From Prasinococcaceae sp. CCMP 1430 (Eukaryota; Plantae; Prasinodermophyta), in the NCBI GenBank assembly GCA_013416795.1, contig RQSC01000017.1, positions 80,650 through 144,649 on the forward strand: a stretch of 64,000 bases of DNA, written 5' to 3'. Below the pieces are notes generated by a model, which was not told the origin of the DNA, made no database searches, and saw only the letters and a list, made by a program, of their open reading frames with translations. Positions 16,265 through 60,722 of this stretch are shown one piece after another. Positions within the stretch are counted from its first letter, which is position 1; each line of letters begins with the position of its first letter. The translations under genes and the position numbers were made by a program.

Positions 16265-16820
16265 NNNNNNNNNNNNNNNNNNNNNNNNNNNNNNNNNNNN
16301 NNNNNNNNNNNNNNNNNNNNNNNNNNNNNNNNNNNNNNNNNNNNNNNNNNNNNNNNNNNNNNNNNNNNNNNNNNNNNNNNNNNNNNNNNNNNNNNNNNNN
16401 NNNNNNNNNNNNNNNNNNNNNNNNNNNNNNNNNNNNNNNNNNNNNNNNNNNNNNNNNNNNNNNNNNNNNNNNNNNNNNNNNNNNNNNNNNNNNNNNNNNN
16501 NNNNNNNNNNNNNNNNNNNNNNNNNNNNNNNNNNNNNNNNNNNNNNNNNNNNNNNNNNNNNNNNNNNNNNNNNNNNNNNNNNNNNNNNNNNNNNNNNNNN
16601 NNNNNNNNNNNNNNNNNNNNNNNNNNNNNNNNNNNNNNNNNNNNNNNNNNNNNNNNNNNNNNNNNNNNNNNNNNNNNNNNNNNNNNNNNNNNNNNNNNNN
16701 NNNNNNNNNNNNNNNNNNNNNNNNNNNNNNNNNNNNNNNNNNNNNNNNNNNNNNNNNNNNNNNNNNNNNNNNNNNNNNNNNNNNNNNNNNNNNNNNNNNN
16801 NNNNNNNNNNNNNNNNNNNN
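16265..16820. other. Assembly gap (N run)
   Basis: Run of N. Confidence 1.
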
Positions 16821-18176: not shown

Positions 18177-19196
18177 TTAGACCTTGGCCGGGCCACCCGT
18201 GAGTAGCGCATGGGCCTCAACAAAGTCTGCGTTCGCCTCGAGCAGCGCTTGGACCGCGCCGCGCCTGCCCACACCTGTTGCGCGGCACAGCGTGTCAACC
18301 CATTCGCACACCTGCGAACGGCGTGCGTCTGACATGGGCGGGAGCTCTGGCGCCGGTGGGCTCGTGTCCGCGGCAAGTCTCGCGGCCGCGACGAGGGCAG
18401 CCGTCGGCACCTCGCTGCCGCCGGCGCCCGATTTGGCCTTCTTCGCAGGCGGCGGGTTGACAGGAGGCGCCTTGGTATCGGGCGGCGCCTCATTTGCACG
18501 CCGGGCGGAGGATTTCGTCTTCGTGCCTCGCGCCACGATCGCGCGCGCCGTTGCGGCGGGGAGGGGCTCCTCGGTGGCGTCGGCGTCTGCGGGCTGCCAG
18601 CCGTTCCGCACCTCCTCCGCGATGAACTTGTTGCGCAGCATGTTGCACCATCGCTGCCGAAGGCTGTTCGCAGAGCGCGGCGCGCACACGCCCTCGCTCT
18701 CCGCGGCCTTCCAGATGTGCATGGAAGACGCCATGTTGCGACCGGAGACGAGGTCGTCCTTTGACATCTTGGAAACCAGCCACGAGATGATGGTCGTGTC
18801 CTCGATCTCGGTGTAGAACTCCTTGGTCACCTTCTTCCCTTTGTTGCCCGATGCAGGTTTGTCCTTCTTGTCAAGCTCGCGCGCGAGCTGTTTGATCTCC
18901 TTGCGCTCCTTGGCAGCGAGCGCGGCCGCTGCCTGCTCGTCGGAAAACGCCTTTGGCGGTCGCACGTCGCGCCGCTTGCGCGCCGAGGCCGGCGAGGACG
19001 ACGCAGCGGGACGGGGCTTCCCCGACTTCTTCGGCGAGGGGGCTGTGTTCTGTGTGGGAGGATGCGCGGCGTTCTGCTGGGCGTCGTTCGCGGGCGCACC
19101 GCTGCCCGCCTGAAGCTGCGGCTGCGCGGAGCCGCCGGCGCCTGTACCCGCATCGCCGCCGCTGAGGGCTTCGACCTCCATCTGCTCGGTCGGCAT
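18177..19196 (-). CDS. Single Myb-domain protein with C-terminal three-helix RCT/UBA-like domain, RAP1(TERF2IP)-like
   Basis: YTEIEDTTIISWL..HIWKAAE..RSANSLRQRWCNMLR (about 18818-18627) and C-terminal VCEWVDTLCRATGVGRRGAVQALLEANADFVEAHALL. Confidence 0.6.
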   Translation of the reverse strand: MPTEQMEVEALSGGDAGTGAGGSAQPQLQAGSGAPANDAQQNAAHPPTQNTAPSPKKSGKPRPAASSSPASARKRRDVRPPKAFSDEQAAAALAAKERKEIKQLARELDKKDKPASGNKGKKVTKEFYTEIEDTTIISWLVSKMSKDDLVSGRNMASSMHIWKAAESEGVCAPRSANSLRQRWCNMLRNKFIAEEVRNGWQPADADATEEPLPAATARAIVARGTKTKSSARRANEAPPDTKAPPVNPPPAKKAKSGAGGSEVPTAALVAAARLAADTSPPAPELPPMSDARRSQVCEWVDTLCRATGVGRRGAVQALLEANADFVEAHALLTGGPAKV

Positions 19197-19614
19197 CGCA
19201 GACTGCCTAGCCTCGGCGCGGCACGTTGTCCGAGTGGCAGCGACGAATCGCCACCAAGTCTCACGAGTGGTCAAGTACGTTACGGGAAACCCTGAGCCCC
19301 GAATGGCCCCGATTCATACAGGAAAACAGTGCTGAGCGATCTGATCAACAGACTACCCTAACCCTAACAAGCCCGATTGACCCTCGCCCCACCGGCGGTG
19401 GACCGGTGCTCTGCGGTCTGCAACGTGCAAACTCTGCACTGCCCACACGCTCCGTCTCTCACTCCAGGGCGTCAGCAGCTTAGCGCTCTCATGCTGGCGG
19501 CGGTGCACCTAGCTAGGCATCGAGCGAGGGGACGAGGGAGCGCCTGCGCATGCACCACACGCAATTGCGCGCGGCGTGCGACCGCGTGCGGAGCTTGTCT
19601 CTGTTGGGTGTGGT

Positions 19615-19699: not shown

Positions 19700-20089
19700 T
19701 TAGAACTCCTGCGAGGCCGAGCCCGAGGACTTGCCGCCCTTCTTCTTGGGCAGGAGCACGGAGTGGATGTTGGGCAGCACGCCGCCGGACGCGATGGTCA
19801 CCGTGCCGAGCAGCTTGGAGAGCTCCTCGTCGTTGCGGATGGCGAGCTGGATGTGGCGCGGCACAATGCGCGACTTCTTGTTGTCGCGGCTGGCGTTGCC
19901 CGCAAGCTCGAGCACCTCCGCAGCGAGGTACTCAAGCACGGCCGCCAGGTACACGGGCGCGCCCGCGCCGAGGCGCGAGGCGTACTTGCCGTTCTTGAGG
20001 TAGCGCGCAATGCGGCCCACCGGGAACTGGAGGCCCGCCTTGGCGGAGCGGGACACCGCCTTGGACTTGGTCTTGCCACGGCCGGCCAT
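19700..20089 (-). CDS. H2AX: Histone H2A.X, intronless, 129 aa
   Basis: Canonical H2A core ([15 protein letters not shown]..) and C-terminal SASQEF. Confidence 0.97.
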
Positions 20090-20747: not shown

Positions 20748-21098
20748 ATGGCTCCCAAGAAGGCTGACAAGAAGCCCGCCAAGAAGACCGTCAAGGGCGG
20801 CGCCAAGAAGGCGAAGAAGCCGACGGAGTCGTACAAGATCTACATCTACAAGGTGCTCAAGCAGGTGCACCCCGACACCGGCATCTCGTCCAAGGCCATG
20901 TCGATCATGAACTCGTTCATCAACGACATCTTCGAGAAGATCGCCACCGAGGCGTCCAAGCTCGCGGTCTACAACAAGAAGCCCACCATCACCTCGCGCG
21001 AGATCCAGACCGCCGTGCGCCTCATCCTCCCGGGTGAGCTCGCCAAGCACGCCGTGTCGGAGGGCACCAAGGCCGTCACCAAGTTCACCTCGGCCTAA
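20748..21098 (+). CDS. H2B: Histone H2B, intronless, 116 aa
   Basis: [39 protein letters not shown]. Confidence 0.98.
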
Positions 21099-21103
21099 GC
21101 GCC

Positions 21104-21261
21104 NNNNNNNNNNNNNNNNNNNNNNNNNNNNNNNNNNNNNNNNNNNNNNNNNNNNNNNNNNNNNNNNNNNNNNNNNNNNNNNNNNNNNNNNNNNNNNNNN
21201 NNNNNNNNNNNNNNNNNNNNNNNNNNNNNNNNNNNNNNNNNNNNNNNNNNNNNNNNNNNNN
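21104..21261. other. Assembly gap (N run)
   Basis: Run of N. Confidence 1.
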
Positions 21262-26350: not shown

Positions 26351-27148
26351 CTCTCCACCCAAAGAGGAGCTGACTGAAGCGGAGAGGGGGGTGAAGGGGG
26401 GAAGCGACAGAGGTGTGGCGCCCGCGCCCGCGCGCGCCCCCCCCCCCCCCTCGTCCCCCCCGGTTGCGTCATCTTATCCAATCGCCGGCCTGCGCGCGCC
26501 CGCCACGCGCCGCCCGCCGCGCACGGATCCGAGGATTCCCATCCGATTACCGCTCACGCCCCCACGACAGGAATCGCGATCGCCCCGCGTGCCCACCGGC
26601 GTGACCGGGCCGGCGATCGAAAAGATGCCGTCGACGGGCGGACGAGAACGAAACGACGGCATGCGGCTGTGGCACGTGCCGTGTGACGTCCACCGACCAA
26701 GTTGCACCAACCAACCACCCGAAGCTCATTGAACGAGACATCGATGGGATGCATGGATGGACTTCGGTCGGGAAAAAGTCATGCTTCGCTTCGTCGGTGC
26801 GTTGCTAACCCTATCAAAACCCTAAACCCCAGCCCCGAATGCGAAGTCCCCCCTGCGTTCAGCAGGGGTGTTGCACCGCGGCTCTATCCGCCCCGAGCCC
26901 CGGCAGCGCGCGCGCGCGCCCACTGCCACAGCTTCTGCAACAAGCGCTGGCAACCACGTAGTACATTCATGAGGGCGGGCGGGGGCGGCTCGGGGGGGGC
27001 GCGCTCGCGTCGCTGGCGTGCGCGGCGGTCCGGCTGACCTAGGGAGTCCAACGCGCTCTCTCTCCTCCCCTCCTGGACCCACTCGCCCCGATGCACCTGC
27101 ACACCGCCCTTGCGCCCTCGCCTGCACCGCGACCGTCGCCCTTCGCAG

Positions 27149-47277: not shown

Positions 47278-47906
47278 NNNNNNNNNNNNNNNNNNNNNNN
47301 NNNNNNNNNNNNNNNNNNNNNNNNNNNNNNNNNNNNNNNNNNNNNNNNNNNNNNNNNNNNNNNNNNNNNNNNNNNNNNNNNNNNNNNNNNNNNNNNNNNN
47401 NNNNNNNNNNNNNNNNNNNNNNNNNNNNNNNNNNNNNNNNNNNNNNNNNNNNNNNNNNNNNNNNNNNNNNNNNNNNNNNNNNNNNNNNNNNNNNNNNNNN
47501 NNNNNNNNNNNNNNNNNNNNNNNNNNNNNNNNNNNNNNNNNNNNNNNNNNNNNNNNNNNNNNNNNNNNNNNNNNNNNNNNNNNNNNNNNNNNNNNNNNNN
47601 NNNNNNNNNNNNNNNNNNNNNNNNNNNNNNNNNNNNNNNNNNNNNNNNNNNNNNNNNNNNNNNNNNNNNNNNNNNNNNNNNNNNNNNNNNNNNNNNNNNN
47701 NNNNNNNNNNNNNNNNNNNNNNNNNNNNNNNNNNNNNNNNNNNNNNNNNNNNNNNNNNNNNNNNNNNNNNNNNNNNNNNNNNNNNNNNNNNNNNNNNNNN
47801 NNNNNNNNNNNNNNNNNNNNNNNNNNNNNNNNNNNNNNNNNNNNNNNNNNNNNNNNNNNNNNNNNNNNNNNNNNNNNNNNNNNNNNNNNNNNNNNNNNNN
47901 NNNNNN
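47278..47906. other. Assembly gap (N run)
   Basis: Run of N. Confidence 1.
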
Positions 47907-54329: not shown

Positions 54330-54974
54330 ATGCTGCGCGCGGCGGCGGCGCGCGCGCTCGGCGCGCTGGGCGACGGGGCGGCCGTGGCCGCGCAGGGCAG
54401 CGCGGCGCCCGCCGCGCGAGGCGCTCTCGAGCGCGCGCTCGGAGGCGTGCGCACGGCGACCAAGAAGGCCGGTGGCACGTCTAAGAATGGACGTGACTCC
54501 AACCCGAAGTACCTGGGCCTCAAGAAGGCCGGCGGGCAGCCGGTCGCACCGGGGAACATCATCGTGCGCCAGCGCGGGCGCAAGTACCACCCGGGGGACA
54601 CCCACTCCGTGGGCATGGGCAAGGTGCGTGCAAGGGGCAGGGGGTGCGCTGTGTCACGAGTGTGGTGCTGGCTCTCGCTGGACCCTCCGCACGCGTGCCT
54701 CGCCCTCCGCCCCTGAATGGGCGAGGCGGGGCTGCCTCTCGTCGGCGCCCTCTTGCCAACCCTAAATATCGCCATGCCCTGCCTGCCGTGTTCGCCGTGC
54801 TGACTGCCCCACGCGCACCGCTGGCGCTCCTCGCGCGGCGCGCAGGACCACACCATCTATGCGCTGATTGAGGGCAGGGTGAAGTTTACCAAGGTGCCGC
54901 ATCGCCTCGGCCGCAAGGGCTATCGATCGTTCGTATACGTGCAACCGTTCGCCGCCTCGGCGGCAGCGCAATAG
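54330..54974 (+). CDS. MRPL27: Organellar (probably mitochondrial) ribosomal protein bL27, 2 exons (54330-54623, 54846-54974)
   Basis: [56 protein letters not shown], preceded by a targeting peptide. Confidence 0.9.
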
Positions 54975-57351: not shown

Positions 57352-58399
57352 ACGTACTGTAAATGCACACAAATAGTCCCCTGAATAAAAAGCTCCGTCC
57401 AACCACGCTGCATGCATCACGCACCCCTACCACGACGAAAAGGCACACCCACGCGATGACCGAAGGGGCATGCGGCACTCGCACCCTCCGACGGATCCCC
57501 GCCAACCACCCACCCAACCAACCAACCAACGACCCGCCAACCGACCGACCGACCGACCGGGGGATGAAACTGGCACTGAATACGCGCCGCGGAGGGAGGG
57601 AGGGAGGGAGACAGAGAGAGCGCGGCAGGGCGCAGGCGGACGGAGGGGGATGGGAGCTCCCTCCCTCCCTCCCTCCCTCCCTCGGGAGGAACAGACACAG
57701 AGAGCAGAGCGCCCTCCCCTCCCCTCCCCTTCCCTCGGGAGGAACAGGGACAGCGCCCGAACCCCGAACCTCCCGCGGGCGCACCCGCGTCCGAACGCGT
57801 CGAAATGAGTGCGGCGCATCGATGTGTACAAACCCTCCAATTGACCCTAAACTTGGGCTGCCTTGGGGGCAGAGGAGGGTGCTGCACAGAGGGTGGGTGG
57901 GTGGGGGTGGGTGGGGGGCACGCCGAGCGGCGCAGCAGGGGTCGACGCGGGCCGTGCGTCGCGACAGGGTGGAGGGGGCCGTGTGCGCCCATCGGCTCCC
58001 CCGCGGCGTCGTTGGGTGCGCGCGTTCGGAGGGGCAGGCAAGGCGCGGGGGGGGGGGGGACGTCTCTGCTGCTTGGGCACCGGCCGGGGCGCGCACCGTC
58101 CGCGGCGTGGGCTGTCGGTCGGCGAGAGCGCGAGCGCGCCGCATCCGGATACCGCGAGTGGTGTGCGACAGCGGGGTGGAACCCATCGCCCGCCGGGGCG
58201 AGGCGCACCTGCGGCCTCGCAGTGGCGCGGCGAGAGCGGCGGCGGCGCACCCGGCGGCGNGTGCGACGCGGCCGGAGCAGGGGCGCTGCACGCTGCATAG
58301 GCGTTCAGGCGGGTTGTCGACGGGGCGCGGGCGGGGCACGACGGTGACGATCGTGCGAAGTCATGAGCCATAGCCACGATTCGCGGGCCACAAGCCAGA

Positions 58400-60587: not shown

Positions 60588-60722
60588 NNNNNNNNNNNNN
60601 NNNNNNNNNNNNNNNNNNNNNNNNNNNNNNNNNNNNNNNNNNNNNNNNNNNNNNNNNNNNNNNNNNNNNNNNNNNNNNNNNNNNNNNNNNNNNNNNNNNN
60701 NNNNNNNNNNNNNNNNNNNNNN
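60588..60722. other. Assembly gap (N run)
   Basis: Run of N. Confidence 1.

Follow-up and report, generated by a model that had tools for sequence, protein, structure and literature searches.

A promising but unproven RAP1-like gene in a prasinodermophyte alga

Does the green lineage retain a relative of the shelterin protein RAP1 (TERF2IP)? RAP1 is distributed across opisthokonts and trypanosomes (PMC10813129), which makes an ancestral gene in the green lineage plausible. Two telomere reviews name no RAP1 counterpart for plants (PMC6356271, PMC4924339), most shelterin genes were not found in BLAST searches of Chlamydomonas (PMC6549138), and a recent preprint makes the case for tracing TRF2-like TRFL7 to the base of the green lineage (bioRxiv 10.64898/2026.01.29.702503). 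The question is raised here by an open reading frame (ORF) in a 64,000-nucleotide stretch of the GC-rich genome of the marine green picoalga Prasinococcaceae sp. CCMP 1430 (contig RQSC01000017.1, positions 80,650 to 144,649; hereafter the window). An earlier note, made from the letters alone, had read the ORF as a candidate RAP1 homologue with one Myb domain and a C-terminal helical unit. Both peptides that it quoted are in the ORF, as the two conserved blocks of the protein (Table 1). We find this algal protein promising, though unproven, as the first relative of RAP1 from the green lineage; it lacks two of the three parts that typify RAP1.

Table 1. Features of the candidate RAP1-like gene, in window coordinates
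Feature	Position	Strand	Details
CDS, single exon, complete	18177..19196	(-)	339 codons + stop; stop codon 18177-18179, ATG at 19196
N-terminal 124 residues, low-complexity, disordered	18825..19196	(-)	no Pfam domain; AF2 pLDDT <50
Myb domain, probable Rap1 type, aa 125-195	18612..18824	(-)	Pfam PF08914, Atlas neighbours, hhalign
Linker, aa 196-287, A/P-rich, poorly conserved	18336..18611	(-)	several indels vs orthologue; AF2 pLDDT <50
UBA-like three-helix bundle, aa 288-336	18189..18335	(-)	AF2 pLDDT 81, Foldseek, VIA-align
Tandem telomere-like motif TTAGGGTTAGGGT, candidate telo-box promoter element	19355..19367	(-), gene sense strand	~160 bp upstream of ATG

The gene and its constrained blocks

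The ORF is a genuine gene in which constraint is confined to the Myb and C-terminal blocks. According to the ORF list and the sequence, its 339-residue product is encoded without introns. GC3 is 0.815 across the whole coding sequence and 0.90 in the Myb part, exceeding GC1 and GC2, and the adjacent histone genes show the same ordering. TARA ocean metagenome contigs carry a protein 98% identical to it. An exhaustive phmmer search of 1.84 billion protein representatives recovered an orthologue from a sister species as two halves; once two GT..AG introns are removed, it reads in frame for 332 residues. Together, the GC3 ordering, the metagenome copy and the spliced orthologue indicate a real gene rather than an ORF that arose by chance in GC-rich DNA.

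The two proteins are conserved only in the Myb block, at 55% identity, and in the C-terminal block, at 64-69%. The N-terminal 124 residues are unconserved in the orthologue, whose own N-terminus has only ~80 residues and is Q/A-rich; a convergent gene begins 42 bp downstream of the orthologue locus. Between two near-identical strains of the alga, six of eight codon differences are non-synonymous, too small a sample (n=8) for dN/dS to be informative. Five of these six replacements fall in disordered parts, and the sixth (N189D) is in the Myb block, at its C-terminal end. Evidence of transcription is thin: two short contigs from one seawater RNA library lie on the coding sequence (18703-19034), and contigs from two culture-derived runs, possibly RNA, leave it uncovered.

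The protein appears to be of nuclear type. The N-terminal region holds a basic patch, RKRR (aa 73-76; 18969-18980), and one predicted helix (aa 86-111), and the linker holds a nuclear localization signal (NLS)-like patch, AKKAK (aa 251-255; 18432-18446). A BRCT domain is present in all known RAP1 homologues, according to reviews (PMC10813129). The earlier note saw none in the algal protein, and Pfam agrees, with no match to PF16589 at E <= 10. The upstream H2A gene ends approximately 500 bp from the ATG, leaving no space for a hidden upstream BRCT exon; a hidden downstream RAP1 C-terminal (RCT) exon was likewise rejected, as the adjoining genes leave no space. We discarded a full-length AF2 model built from a five-sequence alignment (pLDDT 42), whose Foldseek matches to polymerases and haemoglobins are meaningless, and ESM-Atlas features were uninformative both for the complete protein and for the C-terminus.

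Relatives of the gene are scarce. The phmmer search returned nothing beyond the near-identical copy and that one orthologue in its two halves. A word-index search, with the whole protein or the Myb region alone, gave only the near-identical metagenome copy, and no relatives were found in two scans of JGI metagenomes with degenerate patterns of the C-terminal and Myb blocks. From these searches, the gene is known from only two closely related species, with no bridging sequences.

Telomere-like motifs occur upstream of both genes. In the orthologue promoter, AAAACCCTAA lies ~210 bp upstream of the ATG. Within the window, TAGGGTTAGGG occurs once, and TTAGGGT occurs 5 times versus 0.95 expected.

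The Myb domain

The Myb block belongs to the Myb/SANT homeodomain-like superfamily, judged by its three helices (predicted at aa 130-143, 155-167 and 177-197), an aromatic core and the third-helix motif R-x-x-x-[LI]-[KR]-x-R-W, with Pfam matches to PF08914, PF00249 and PF13921. In the third helix it can be aligned with c-Myb R3 and MYB3. The Rap1 Myb family, PF08914, is the top Pfam family in both orthologues, at model positions 1-55 of 59. The algal protein scores 19.0 bits (E 0.0019) against a cut-off of 27.1, with a lead of 2.1 bits over the next Myb family. The sister-species orthologue reaches 26.7 bits (E 7.4e-6), 0.4 bit short of that cut-off; its next family scores 17.9 bits, so that PF08914 is ahead of generic Myb by 8.8 bits. 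The profile search proposed in the earlier note put the Rap1 Myb family first, at scores below the cut-off, and returned no Rap1_C.

Other methods point the same way. In ESM-Atlas, the nearest named clusters to aa 122-198 are both Myb_Rap1 (0.88, with 178 shared features, and 0.84). By hhalign, the algal Myb profile matches the human RAP1 Myb, whose sequence was checked against 1fex, at a score of 26.3 (E 6.9e-5) over all 54 residues; in 200 shuffles the score was 9.3 +/- 2.2 and never exceeded 18.6. Other Mybs scored 22.3 (c-Myb R3, 26 columns), 17.7 (TRF2, 27 columns) and 17.3 (c-Myb R2). Only the RAP1 Myb gives a whole-domain alignment that takes in both helix 1 and the V-[ST]-G loop. For the orthologue Myb alone, the local alignment to c-Myb R3 scored 24.5 versus 21.4 for RAP1. 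A profile run against PDB sequences matched c-Myb R3 weakly and left human RAP1 unmatched at E <= 10; across PDB sequence searches with the protein and the domain profiles, RAP1 was absent and the matches were chance ones or c-Myb third-helix ones only. We conclude that the Myb is best matched by the Rap1 Myb family and that its RAP1 reading has moderate support, with all sequence scores below the curated threshold.

Like human TERF2IP/RAP1 (1fex, 3k6g, 8rd4), the algal protein has one central, probably Rap1-type Myb, at 28% identity over 54 residues, and the two share the motifs F/Y-T-x-x-D/E-D, V-[ST]-G, W-K-A-x-E and S-L-[KR]-x-R. Unlike in the human protein, the loop between helices 1 and 2 is longer by 6 residues in the alga. 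The human RAP1 Myb does not bind DNA (PMC10813129). The algal domain differs in having a conserved basic arm on its N-terminal side (GxKGxKxxKE, aa 117-126) and an all-basic third helix (five basic and no acidic residues), features which suggest that it may contact DNA directly.

The C-terminal unit

The C-terminus is predicted to fold as a UBA-like bundle, with the RAP1 RCT among its best structural matches. The model is a compact bundle of the size of the UBA-like superfamily (about 40-50 residues), with helices at aa 290-307, 311-321 and 325-332; the polypeptide stops 3 residues further on. A Foldseek search of 350,542 PDB chains gave ranks 1 and 4 to the human RAP1 RCT and rank 9 to that of S. 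pombe Rap1 (2l3n), the first-ranked chain being 3k6g_A (TMq 0.78, rmsd 1.6 A, 52 columns). In an unbiased, Foldseek-independent VIA-align scan of 48,161 chains, 3k6g_A tied for first with EF-Ts and UBA domains at Z 6.2, a value within the range expected of common small helical folds. It also gave the longest low-rmsd alignment in that scan: 52 residues superpose without gaps at 1.6 A (model 7-58 on RCT 306-357). The register that the earlier note had drawn by eye with human RAP1 317-350 is the same as in this alignment. Its proposed structural check gave a divided result, with the human RCT at rank 1 in Foldseek and UBA-like matches level with it on Z. Nearly all of the top 50 structural matches are UBA, CUE, NAC, EF-Ts or RCT domains (Z 4.2-6.6).

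By sequence, the C-terminus is nearer to UBA-like domains of the EF-Ts, NAC and HYPK type than to the RCT. The nearest Pfam family is UBA_HYPK (E 0.19), and the PF00627 UBA and CUE models have no significant match there. Against the N-terminal UBA-like domain of E. coli EF-Ts, hhalign scores 19.0, with 34% identity over 35 columns (EF-Ts 7-41) and a shuffle maximum of 14.5. Against the human RCT, its probability is 0.9-1.4% and its score 12.6-13.0, within the shuffle range. In the structural alignments, identity is 27-37% to NAC and EF-Ts versus 15-17% to RAP1, and PF11626 (Rap1_C) matches neither orthologue. EF-Ts, NAC-alpha and HYPK domains (e.g., PF19026) have the same fold as the algal bundle (Z 4.9-6.2), are its Atlas shape neighbours and bear the closest sequence resemblance to it, all of it sub-threshold. 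They differ from it in never being joined to a Myb and in the length of helix 1, which at 18 residues is approximately twice theirs in the alga, as in the RAP1 RCT.

The RCT has six helices. In the algal unit three are predicted, superposing on RCT helices 1-3, and the RCT half that is recognizable in both human and yeast Rap1 (human 361-396) is missing. The algal protein resembles human RAP1 in carrying a helical module at its C-terminal end, and differs in having no BRCT, no RCT helices 4-6 and no detectable RCT sequence similarity. The earlier reading as a candidate RAP1 is moderately supported for the Myb (best Pfam family, Atlas neighbours and the alignment to 1fex) and not demonstrated for the RCT (no Rap1_C, hhalign below 1.5%, three helices). 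Among the findings named beforehand as counting against it, a UBA-like C-terminus was seen and a Myb of another family was not, the best-scoring family being that of the Rap1 Myb.

Competing explanations and significance

We tentatively favor the view that the gene is a reduced, divergent relative of RAP1/TERF2IP encoding a small nuclear adaptor, a reading that we place just short of an even chance. The domain order is that of RAP1, with a Myb followed by a helical module at the extreme C-terminus. The runner-up, only slightly less probable, is that the gene encodes a nuclear Myb/SANT factor peculiar to this lineage, with a generic UBA-like C-terminus and no RAP1 ancestry, acting in transcription or chromatin regulation rather than at telomeres. 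Its score against the Rap1 model would be owed to the long helix 1-helix 2 loop, and its C-terminus would be a protein-binding or ubiquitin-binding module of the EF-Ts/NAC/HYPK type. This account gains from the resemblance of the C-terminus to UBA_HYPK and EF-Ts, from structural lists made up almost wholly of UBA, CUE, NAC and EF-Ts domains, and from the absence of BRCT and Rap1_C with three helices only. It also gains from the slim lead of PF08914 in the algal Myb, from the slightly better alignment of the orthologue Myb to c-Myb R3 than to RAP1, and from an all-basic third helix that is like those of DNA-binding Myb repeats and unlike that of human RAP1. However, the orthologue clearly prefers PF08914, RAP1 alone aligns across the whole Myb domain, and the independent language-model neighbours are Rap1-Myb clusters. 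The account further needs coincidence to explain why, among the UBA-like folds of the PDB, the RAP1 RCT comes first with S. pombe in the top ten.

Domain shuffling is improbable in our estimation. It would have joined a genuine Rap1-type Myb secondarily to an unrelated UBA-like module, giving a protein that is not a RAP1 orthologue and need not be telomeric. The evidence for the Myb is clearly stronger than that for the RCT, and the Atlas holds clusters of short proteins with a Rap1 Myb only, which indicates that the domain occurs outside the canonical architecture. Against this, the C-terminal module finds its closest structural match in the RAP1 RCT, which has the same C-terminal position in RAP1. 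Far less probable again is a chance ORF or decaying pseudogene in a GC-rich genome. Many long ORFs lie on both strands of the GC-rich window, the culture-derived runs have no contig over the coding sequence, and most codon differences between the strains are non-synonymous. Yet the sister species keeps the frame through two introns, conservation follows the domains, GC3 is like that of the histone neighbours, a pair of contigs from an RNA library lies on the gene, nearly all replacements are in disordered parts and the C-terminus folds confidently.

If the gene is a reduced RAP1 relative, its layout of disordered basic N-terminus, Rap1-type Myb, disordered linker with an NLS-like patch and C-terminal three-helix bundle would be what is left after loss of the BRCT and of RCT helices 4-6. 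RCT helices 1 and 2 of human and fission yeast RAP1 bind TRF2 and Taz1. Partner binding by the RCT is mainly via these helices (PMC8653790), and the RCT parts kept in the alga would be helices 1 and 2, the main partner-binding parts. The bundle may dock on a helical motif of a partner, for which a telobox/TRF-like protein is a candidate, and the Myb may touch DNA directly, which would put the protein at telomeric or telo-box chromatin. Fission-yeast Rap1 and Trypanosoma brucei RAP1 are also of the adaptor type, recruited via protein contacts, and the S. pombe RCT is close in fold to the algal model, as noted above. They differ in having BRCT, Myb, Myb-like and full RCT domains (PMC10813129, PMC3487762), where the alga has one Myb and a half-size module. 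The plant TRB and TRFL proteins, including TRFL7, are green-lineage nuclear Myb proteins tied to telomere-like repeats (PMC4924339; bioRxiv 10.64898/2026.01.29.702503). Their telobox Myb is C-terminal in TRFL and N-terminal with an H1/5 domain in TRB, and the algal Myb aligns poorly to the telobox Myb of TRF2.

A more specific proposal, which we consider rather unlikely, is that a miniature RAP1, reduced to its Myb and to the first half of the RCT, which binds partners, has been kept in the deepest-branching green phylum and works alongside a TRF-like telobox protein at telomeres or on telo-box chromatin. In that case, RAP1 would be at least as old as the ancestor shared by Archaeplastida and opisthokonts, and Chlorophyta and Streptophyta would either have lost it or retained it only in an unrecognizably eroded form. 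The minimal functional core of RAP1 would then be the Myb together with RCT helices 1-3. Should the protein be an unrelated Myb-UBA factor, it would be merely an orphan nuclear protein of one small lineage. If the RAP1 reading is true, the picture of an ancestral shelterin core would gain a RAP1-like partner from the green phylum that diverged earliest, and the question could be tested in an alga that grows in culture and has a small genome.

Relatives and reality of the gene

When 1.84 billion representative proteins were searched exhaustively with phmmer, the 339-residue product of the intronless Myb gene had three matches. One (P0001) is a metagenome copy, 98% identical to the window protein, and near-identical copies were also found on TARA ocean metagenome contigs. 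The other two, P0016 and P0017, are adjacent gene calls on one sister-species contig (L007). Reading the L007 DNA, we found two GT..AG introns, one after the low-complexity N-terminus and the other inside the Myb domain, where it separates HLWHE from AETKG; their removal leaves an uninterrupted frame of 999 nt (332 amino acids). Automatic gene callers had broken this orthologue into two proteins. With two introns in the orthologue and none in the window gene, intron gain or loss has occurred between close relatives.

Conservation between the two species is confined to two blocks. The Myb block with its preceding basic arm (GxKGxKxxKE) is 55% identical and the last ~50 residues are 64 to 69% identical; the N-terminus and linker differ in both length and sequence. 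A chance ORF was rejected because the frame is conserved through introns and conservation is restricted to the domains, and it is very improbable that this is not a gene. Evidence for transcription is scant: a seawater RNA library yielded two contigs that map to the ORF, and two culture-derived runs, possibly RNA, cover the neighbouring gene only. The exact protein is absent from a collection of 15 billion proteins, and none of the 21 members of its 90% cluster (all from ENA or Logan metagenome assemblies) is named. Public records thus seem to hold the gene unannotated or without a name.

Features of the Myb gene, its surroundings and its sister-species orthologue (contig L007 where stated; otherwise window positions)
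Feature	Position	Strand	Remark
Myb-gene ORF	18177-19196	minus	ATG 19196, stop codon 18177-18179; 339 residues
Two seawater RNA contigs	18703-19034		
TTAGGGTTAGGGT	19355-19367	minus (sense strand of the Myb gene)	~160 bp upstream of ATG; TTAGGGT doubled
Histone H2A gene	19700-20089	minus	Myb gene ~500 bp downstream
Histone H2B gene	about 20748-21098	plus	divergent pair with H2A
Other TTAGGGT copies	26819-26825, 54759-54765, 57844-57850		
N runs (assembly gaps)	16265-16820, 21104-21261, 47278-47906, 60588-60722		first breaks genes downstream of the Myb gene; second just past H2B
Gene calls P0016, P0017	L007 6001-6645, 6664-7476		
Orthologue introns	L007 6241-6453, 6580-6843		GT..AG
AAAACCCTAA in orthologue promoter	L007 5783-5792	opposite orientation	~210 bp upstream of ATG

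Immediately upstream of the Myb gene, H2A and H2B have a common intergenic region of ~650 bp. Outside the N gaps, the GC content of the window is 62 to 73%. GC3 reaches 0.815 over the whole Myb-gene ORF (0.90 in the Myb part), in both cases exceeding GC at codon positions 1 and 2, as it also does in H2A and H2B (GC3 0.95 to 0.96). The Myb gene is flanked by H2A and a membrane-protein-like ORF, and its orthologue by an unnamed 173-aa gene and a convergent IF-2B/APH fusion gene (766 aa) 42 bp away, with no synteny between the two sets of flanks. TTAGGGT occurs five times in the window (0.95 expected). Given that plant promoters often carry telo-box-like motifs (PMC4924339), we treat it by default as a general promoter element, which may be of telo-box type in this alga.

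The Myb domain

There is no doubt that the domain is Myb/SANT-like, and it is probably a Rap1-type Myb. PF08914 (Myb_Rap1; curated cut-off 27.1 bits) was the best Pfam family for the whole window protein (14.9 bits, E 0.037; next PF13921, Myb_DNA-bind_6, 13.5 bits), for its residues 120 to 200 (19.0 bits, E 0.0019, model 1-55 of 59; next PF13921, 16.9 bits) and for the spliced orthologue domain (26.7 bits, E 7.4e-6, 0.4 bit under the cut-off; next PF00249, Myb_DNA-binding, 17.9 bits). Myb_Rap1 clusters were also the top two in an ESM-Atlas feature search with residues 122 to 198 (0.88, with 178 shared features, and 0.84). For hhalign, target sequences were checked against the PDB (human RAP1, 1fex and 8rd4; c-Myb R2R3, 1gv2 and 1h88; TRF2, 1w0u). 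The algal profile scored 26.3 with the human RAP1 Myb (all 54 columns, 28% identity, E 6.9e-5, probability 63%), 22.3 with c-Myb R3 (26 columns, helices 2-3 only), 17.7 with TRF2 (27 columns) and 17.3 with c-Myb R2 (49 columns); 200 shuffles of the RAP1 sequence gave 9.3 ± 2.2 and never exceeded 18.6. Motifs common to the algal and human RAP1 domains are F/Y-T-x-x-[DE]-D, W-K-A-x-E, S-L-[KR]-x-R...L-R and, in the long helix 1-helix 2 loop, V-[ST]-G.

Counting against the Rap1 type, the orthologue alone matches c-Myb R3 slightly better than RAP1 locally (24.5 versus 21.4, hhalign), and RAP1 was not reached at E ≤ 10 in a profile search of PDB sequences. The by-eye likeness to the TERF2IP (human RAP1) Myb claimed in the earlier note is supported by the best family and a full-length alignment, but at sub-cut-off scores and with a modest margin over c-Myb R3. 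Acidic residues are absent from the third helix, which carries five to six basic ones, and helix 1 follows a conserved basic arm, so that direct DNA contact is conceivable.

The C-terminal unit

In Pfam, only UBA_HYPK (E 0.19) matched the C-terminal unit of the window protein and no family matched that of the orthologue; the Rap1_C profile (PF11626), which the earlier note had proposed to search, was unmatched in both. The human RCT sequence was checked against 3k6g and 8rd4, and that of the E. coli EF-Ts N-terminal domain was likewise verified. Aligned by hhalign to the human RCT (full or helices 1-3), the algal C-terminal profile scored 12.6 to 13.0 (probability 0.9 to 1.4%), within shuffles reaching 18.3; with the UBA-like EF-Ts domain it scored 19.0 (34% identity over 35 columns; shuffle maximum 14.5). 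By sequence, the unit is nearer EF-Ts/NAC-type domains. The recognisably yeast-Rap1-like portion of the human RCT is its second half (query 45-80, human 361-396), which has no algal counterpart.

AlphaFold2, run on the 58-residue unit with a two-species alignment, predicted three helices (residues 290-307, 311-321 and 325-332; pLDDT 81). Among 350,542 PDB chains, Foldseek ranked the human RAP1 RCT with TRF2 (3k6g_A) first (TMq 0.78, rmsd 1.6 Å, 52 columns, probability 0.99, but E 0.49), 3k6g_B fourth and the S. pombe Rap1 RCT (2l3n) ninth, the others being NAC, HYPK, EF-Ts and UBA domains. On this list, VIA-align gave the RAP1 RCT a Z of 6.2, tied with the HHR23A UBA (6.6) and EF-Ts (6.2); values near 6 do not discriminate between small helical bundles. 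A Foldseek-independent VIA-align scan of 48,161 representative chains again placed it at the EF-Ts level (6.2), with the longest low-rmsd alignment (52 gapless residues, model 7-58 to RAP1 306-357), and an ESM-Atlas shape search returned NAC/HYPK and EF-Ts clusters. These searches indicate that the modelled fold is UBA-like, as are RCT helices 1-3, which match the model as well as any other structure, partly because the first helix is unusually long. The proposed resemblance to the first half of the RCT is seen in structure, as a match that ranks first in Foldseek but ties with EF-Ts by Z, and fails at the level of sequence.

The RCT is a six-helix bundle with its main partner contacts from helices 1 and 2 (PMC8653790), whereas the algal C-terminus has at most the first three. 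GGP closes helix 3 in both species, three residues before the protein ends, and the convergent gene 42 bp beyond the orthologue leaves no hidden exon.

RAP1 ancestry and possible function

All known RAP1 homologues are stated to carry BRCT, Myb and RCT domains (PMC10813129), with BRCT and Myb named as the most conserved (Myler et al., PMC8653790). The earlier note saw no BRCT; correctly so, as Pfam matched none in the window protein and the upstream space is insufficient for one. By strict RAP1 membership, the BRCT and a full RCT are lacking and the Myb is borderline.

Our leading reading, held tentatively, is a reduced RAP1-family relative, because independent, individually weak signals coincide: a Rap1-type Myb by Pfam, language-model neighbours and hhalign, and a RAP1 RCT as first structural match. 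The domain order is also RAP1-like, and the lineage could plausibly be an heir of the eukaryotic ancestor's RAP1. What speaks against it is that an RCT signal is missing in the sequence, that an EF-Ts-type domain matches better and that two hallmark parts are absent; almost as probable is an unrelated factor that pairs a Myb with a UBA-like domain. An unlikely variant is a genuine Rap1-type Myb secondarily fused to an unrelated UBA-like module.

The anatomy would fit a nuclear adaptor protein, with a predicted order of disordered basic N-terminus (RKRR patch), Myb domain with basic arm, disordered linker (AKKAK patch) and terminal three-helix protein-binding bundle. One end would contact DNA or chromatin and the other, judging from what UBA-like and RCT modules generally do, would dock to a partner.

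The plant telomere reviews cited here list no RAP1 counterpart for plants (PMC6356271, PMC4924339), and BLAST found almost no shelterin genes in Chlamydomonas (PMC6549138). The alga's phylum diverged before the Chlorophyta-Streptophyta split (PMC7455551). The gene is a good, testable candidate for a RAP1 relative, short of a demonstrated case. If it is one, it would represent a new and reduced form from a phylum older than that split.
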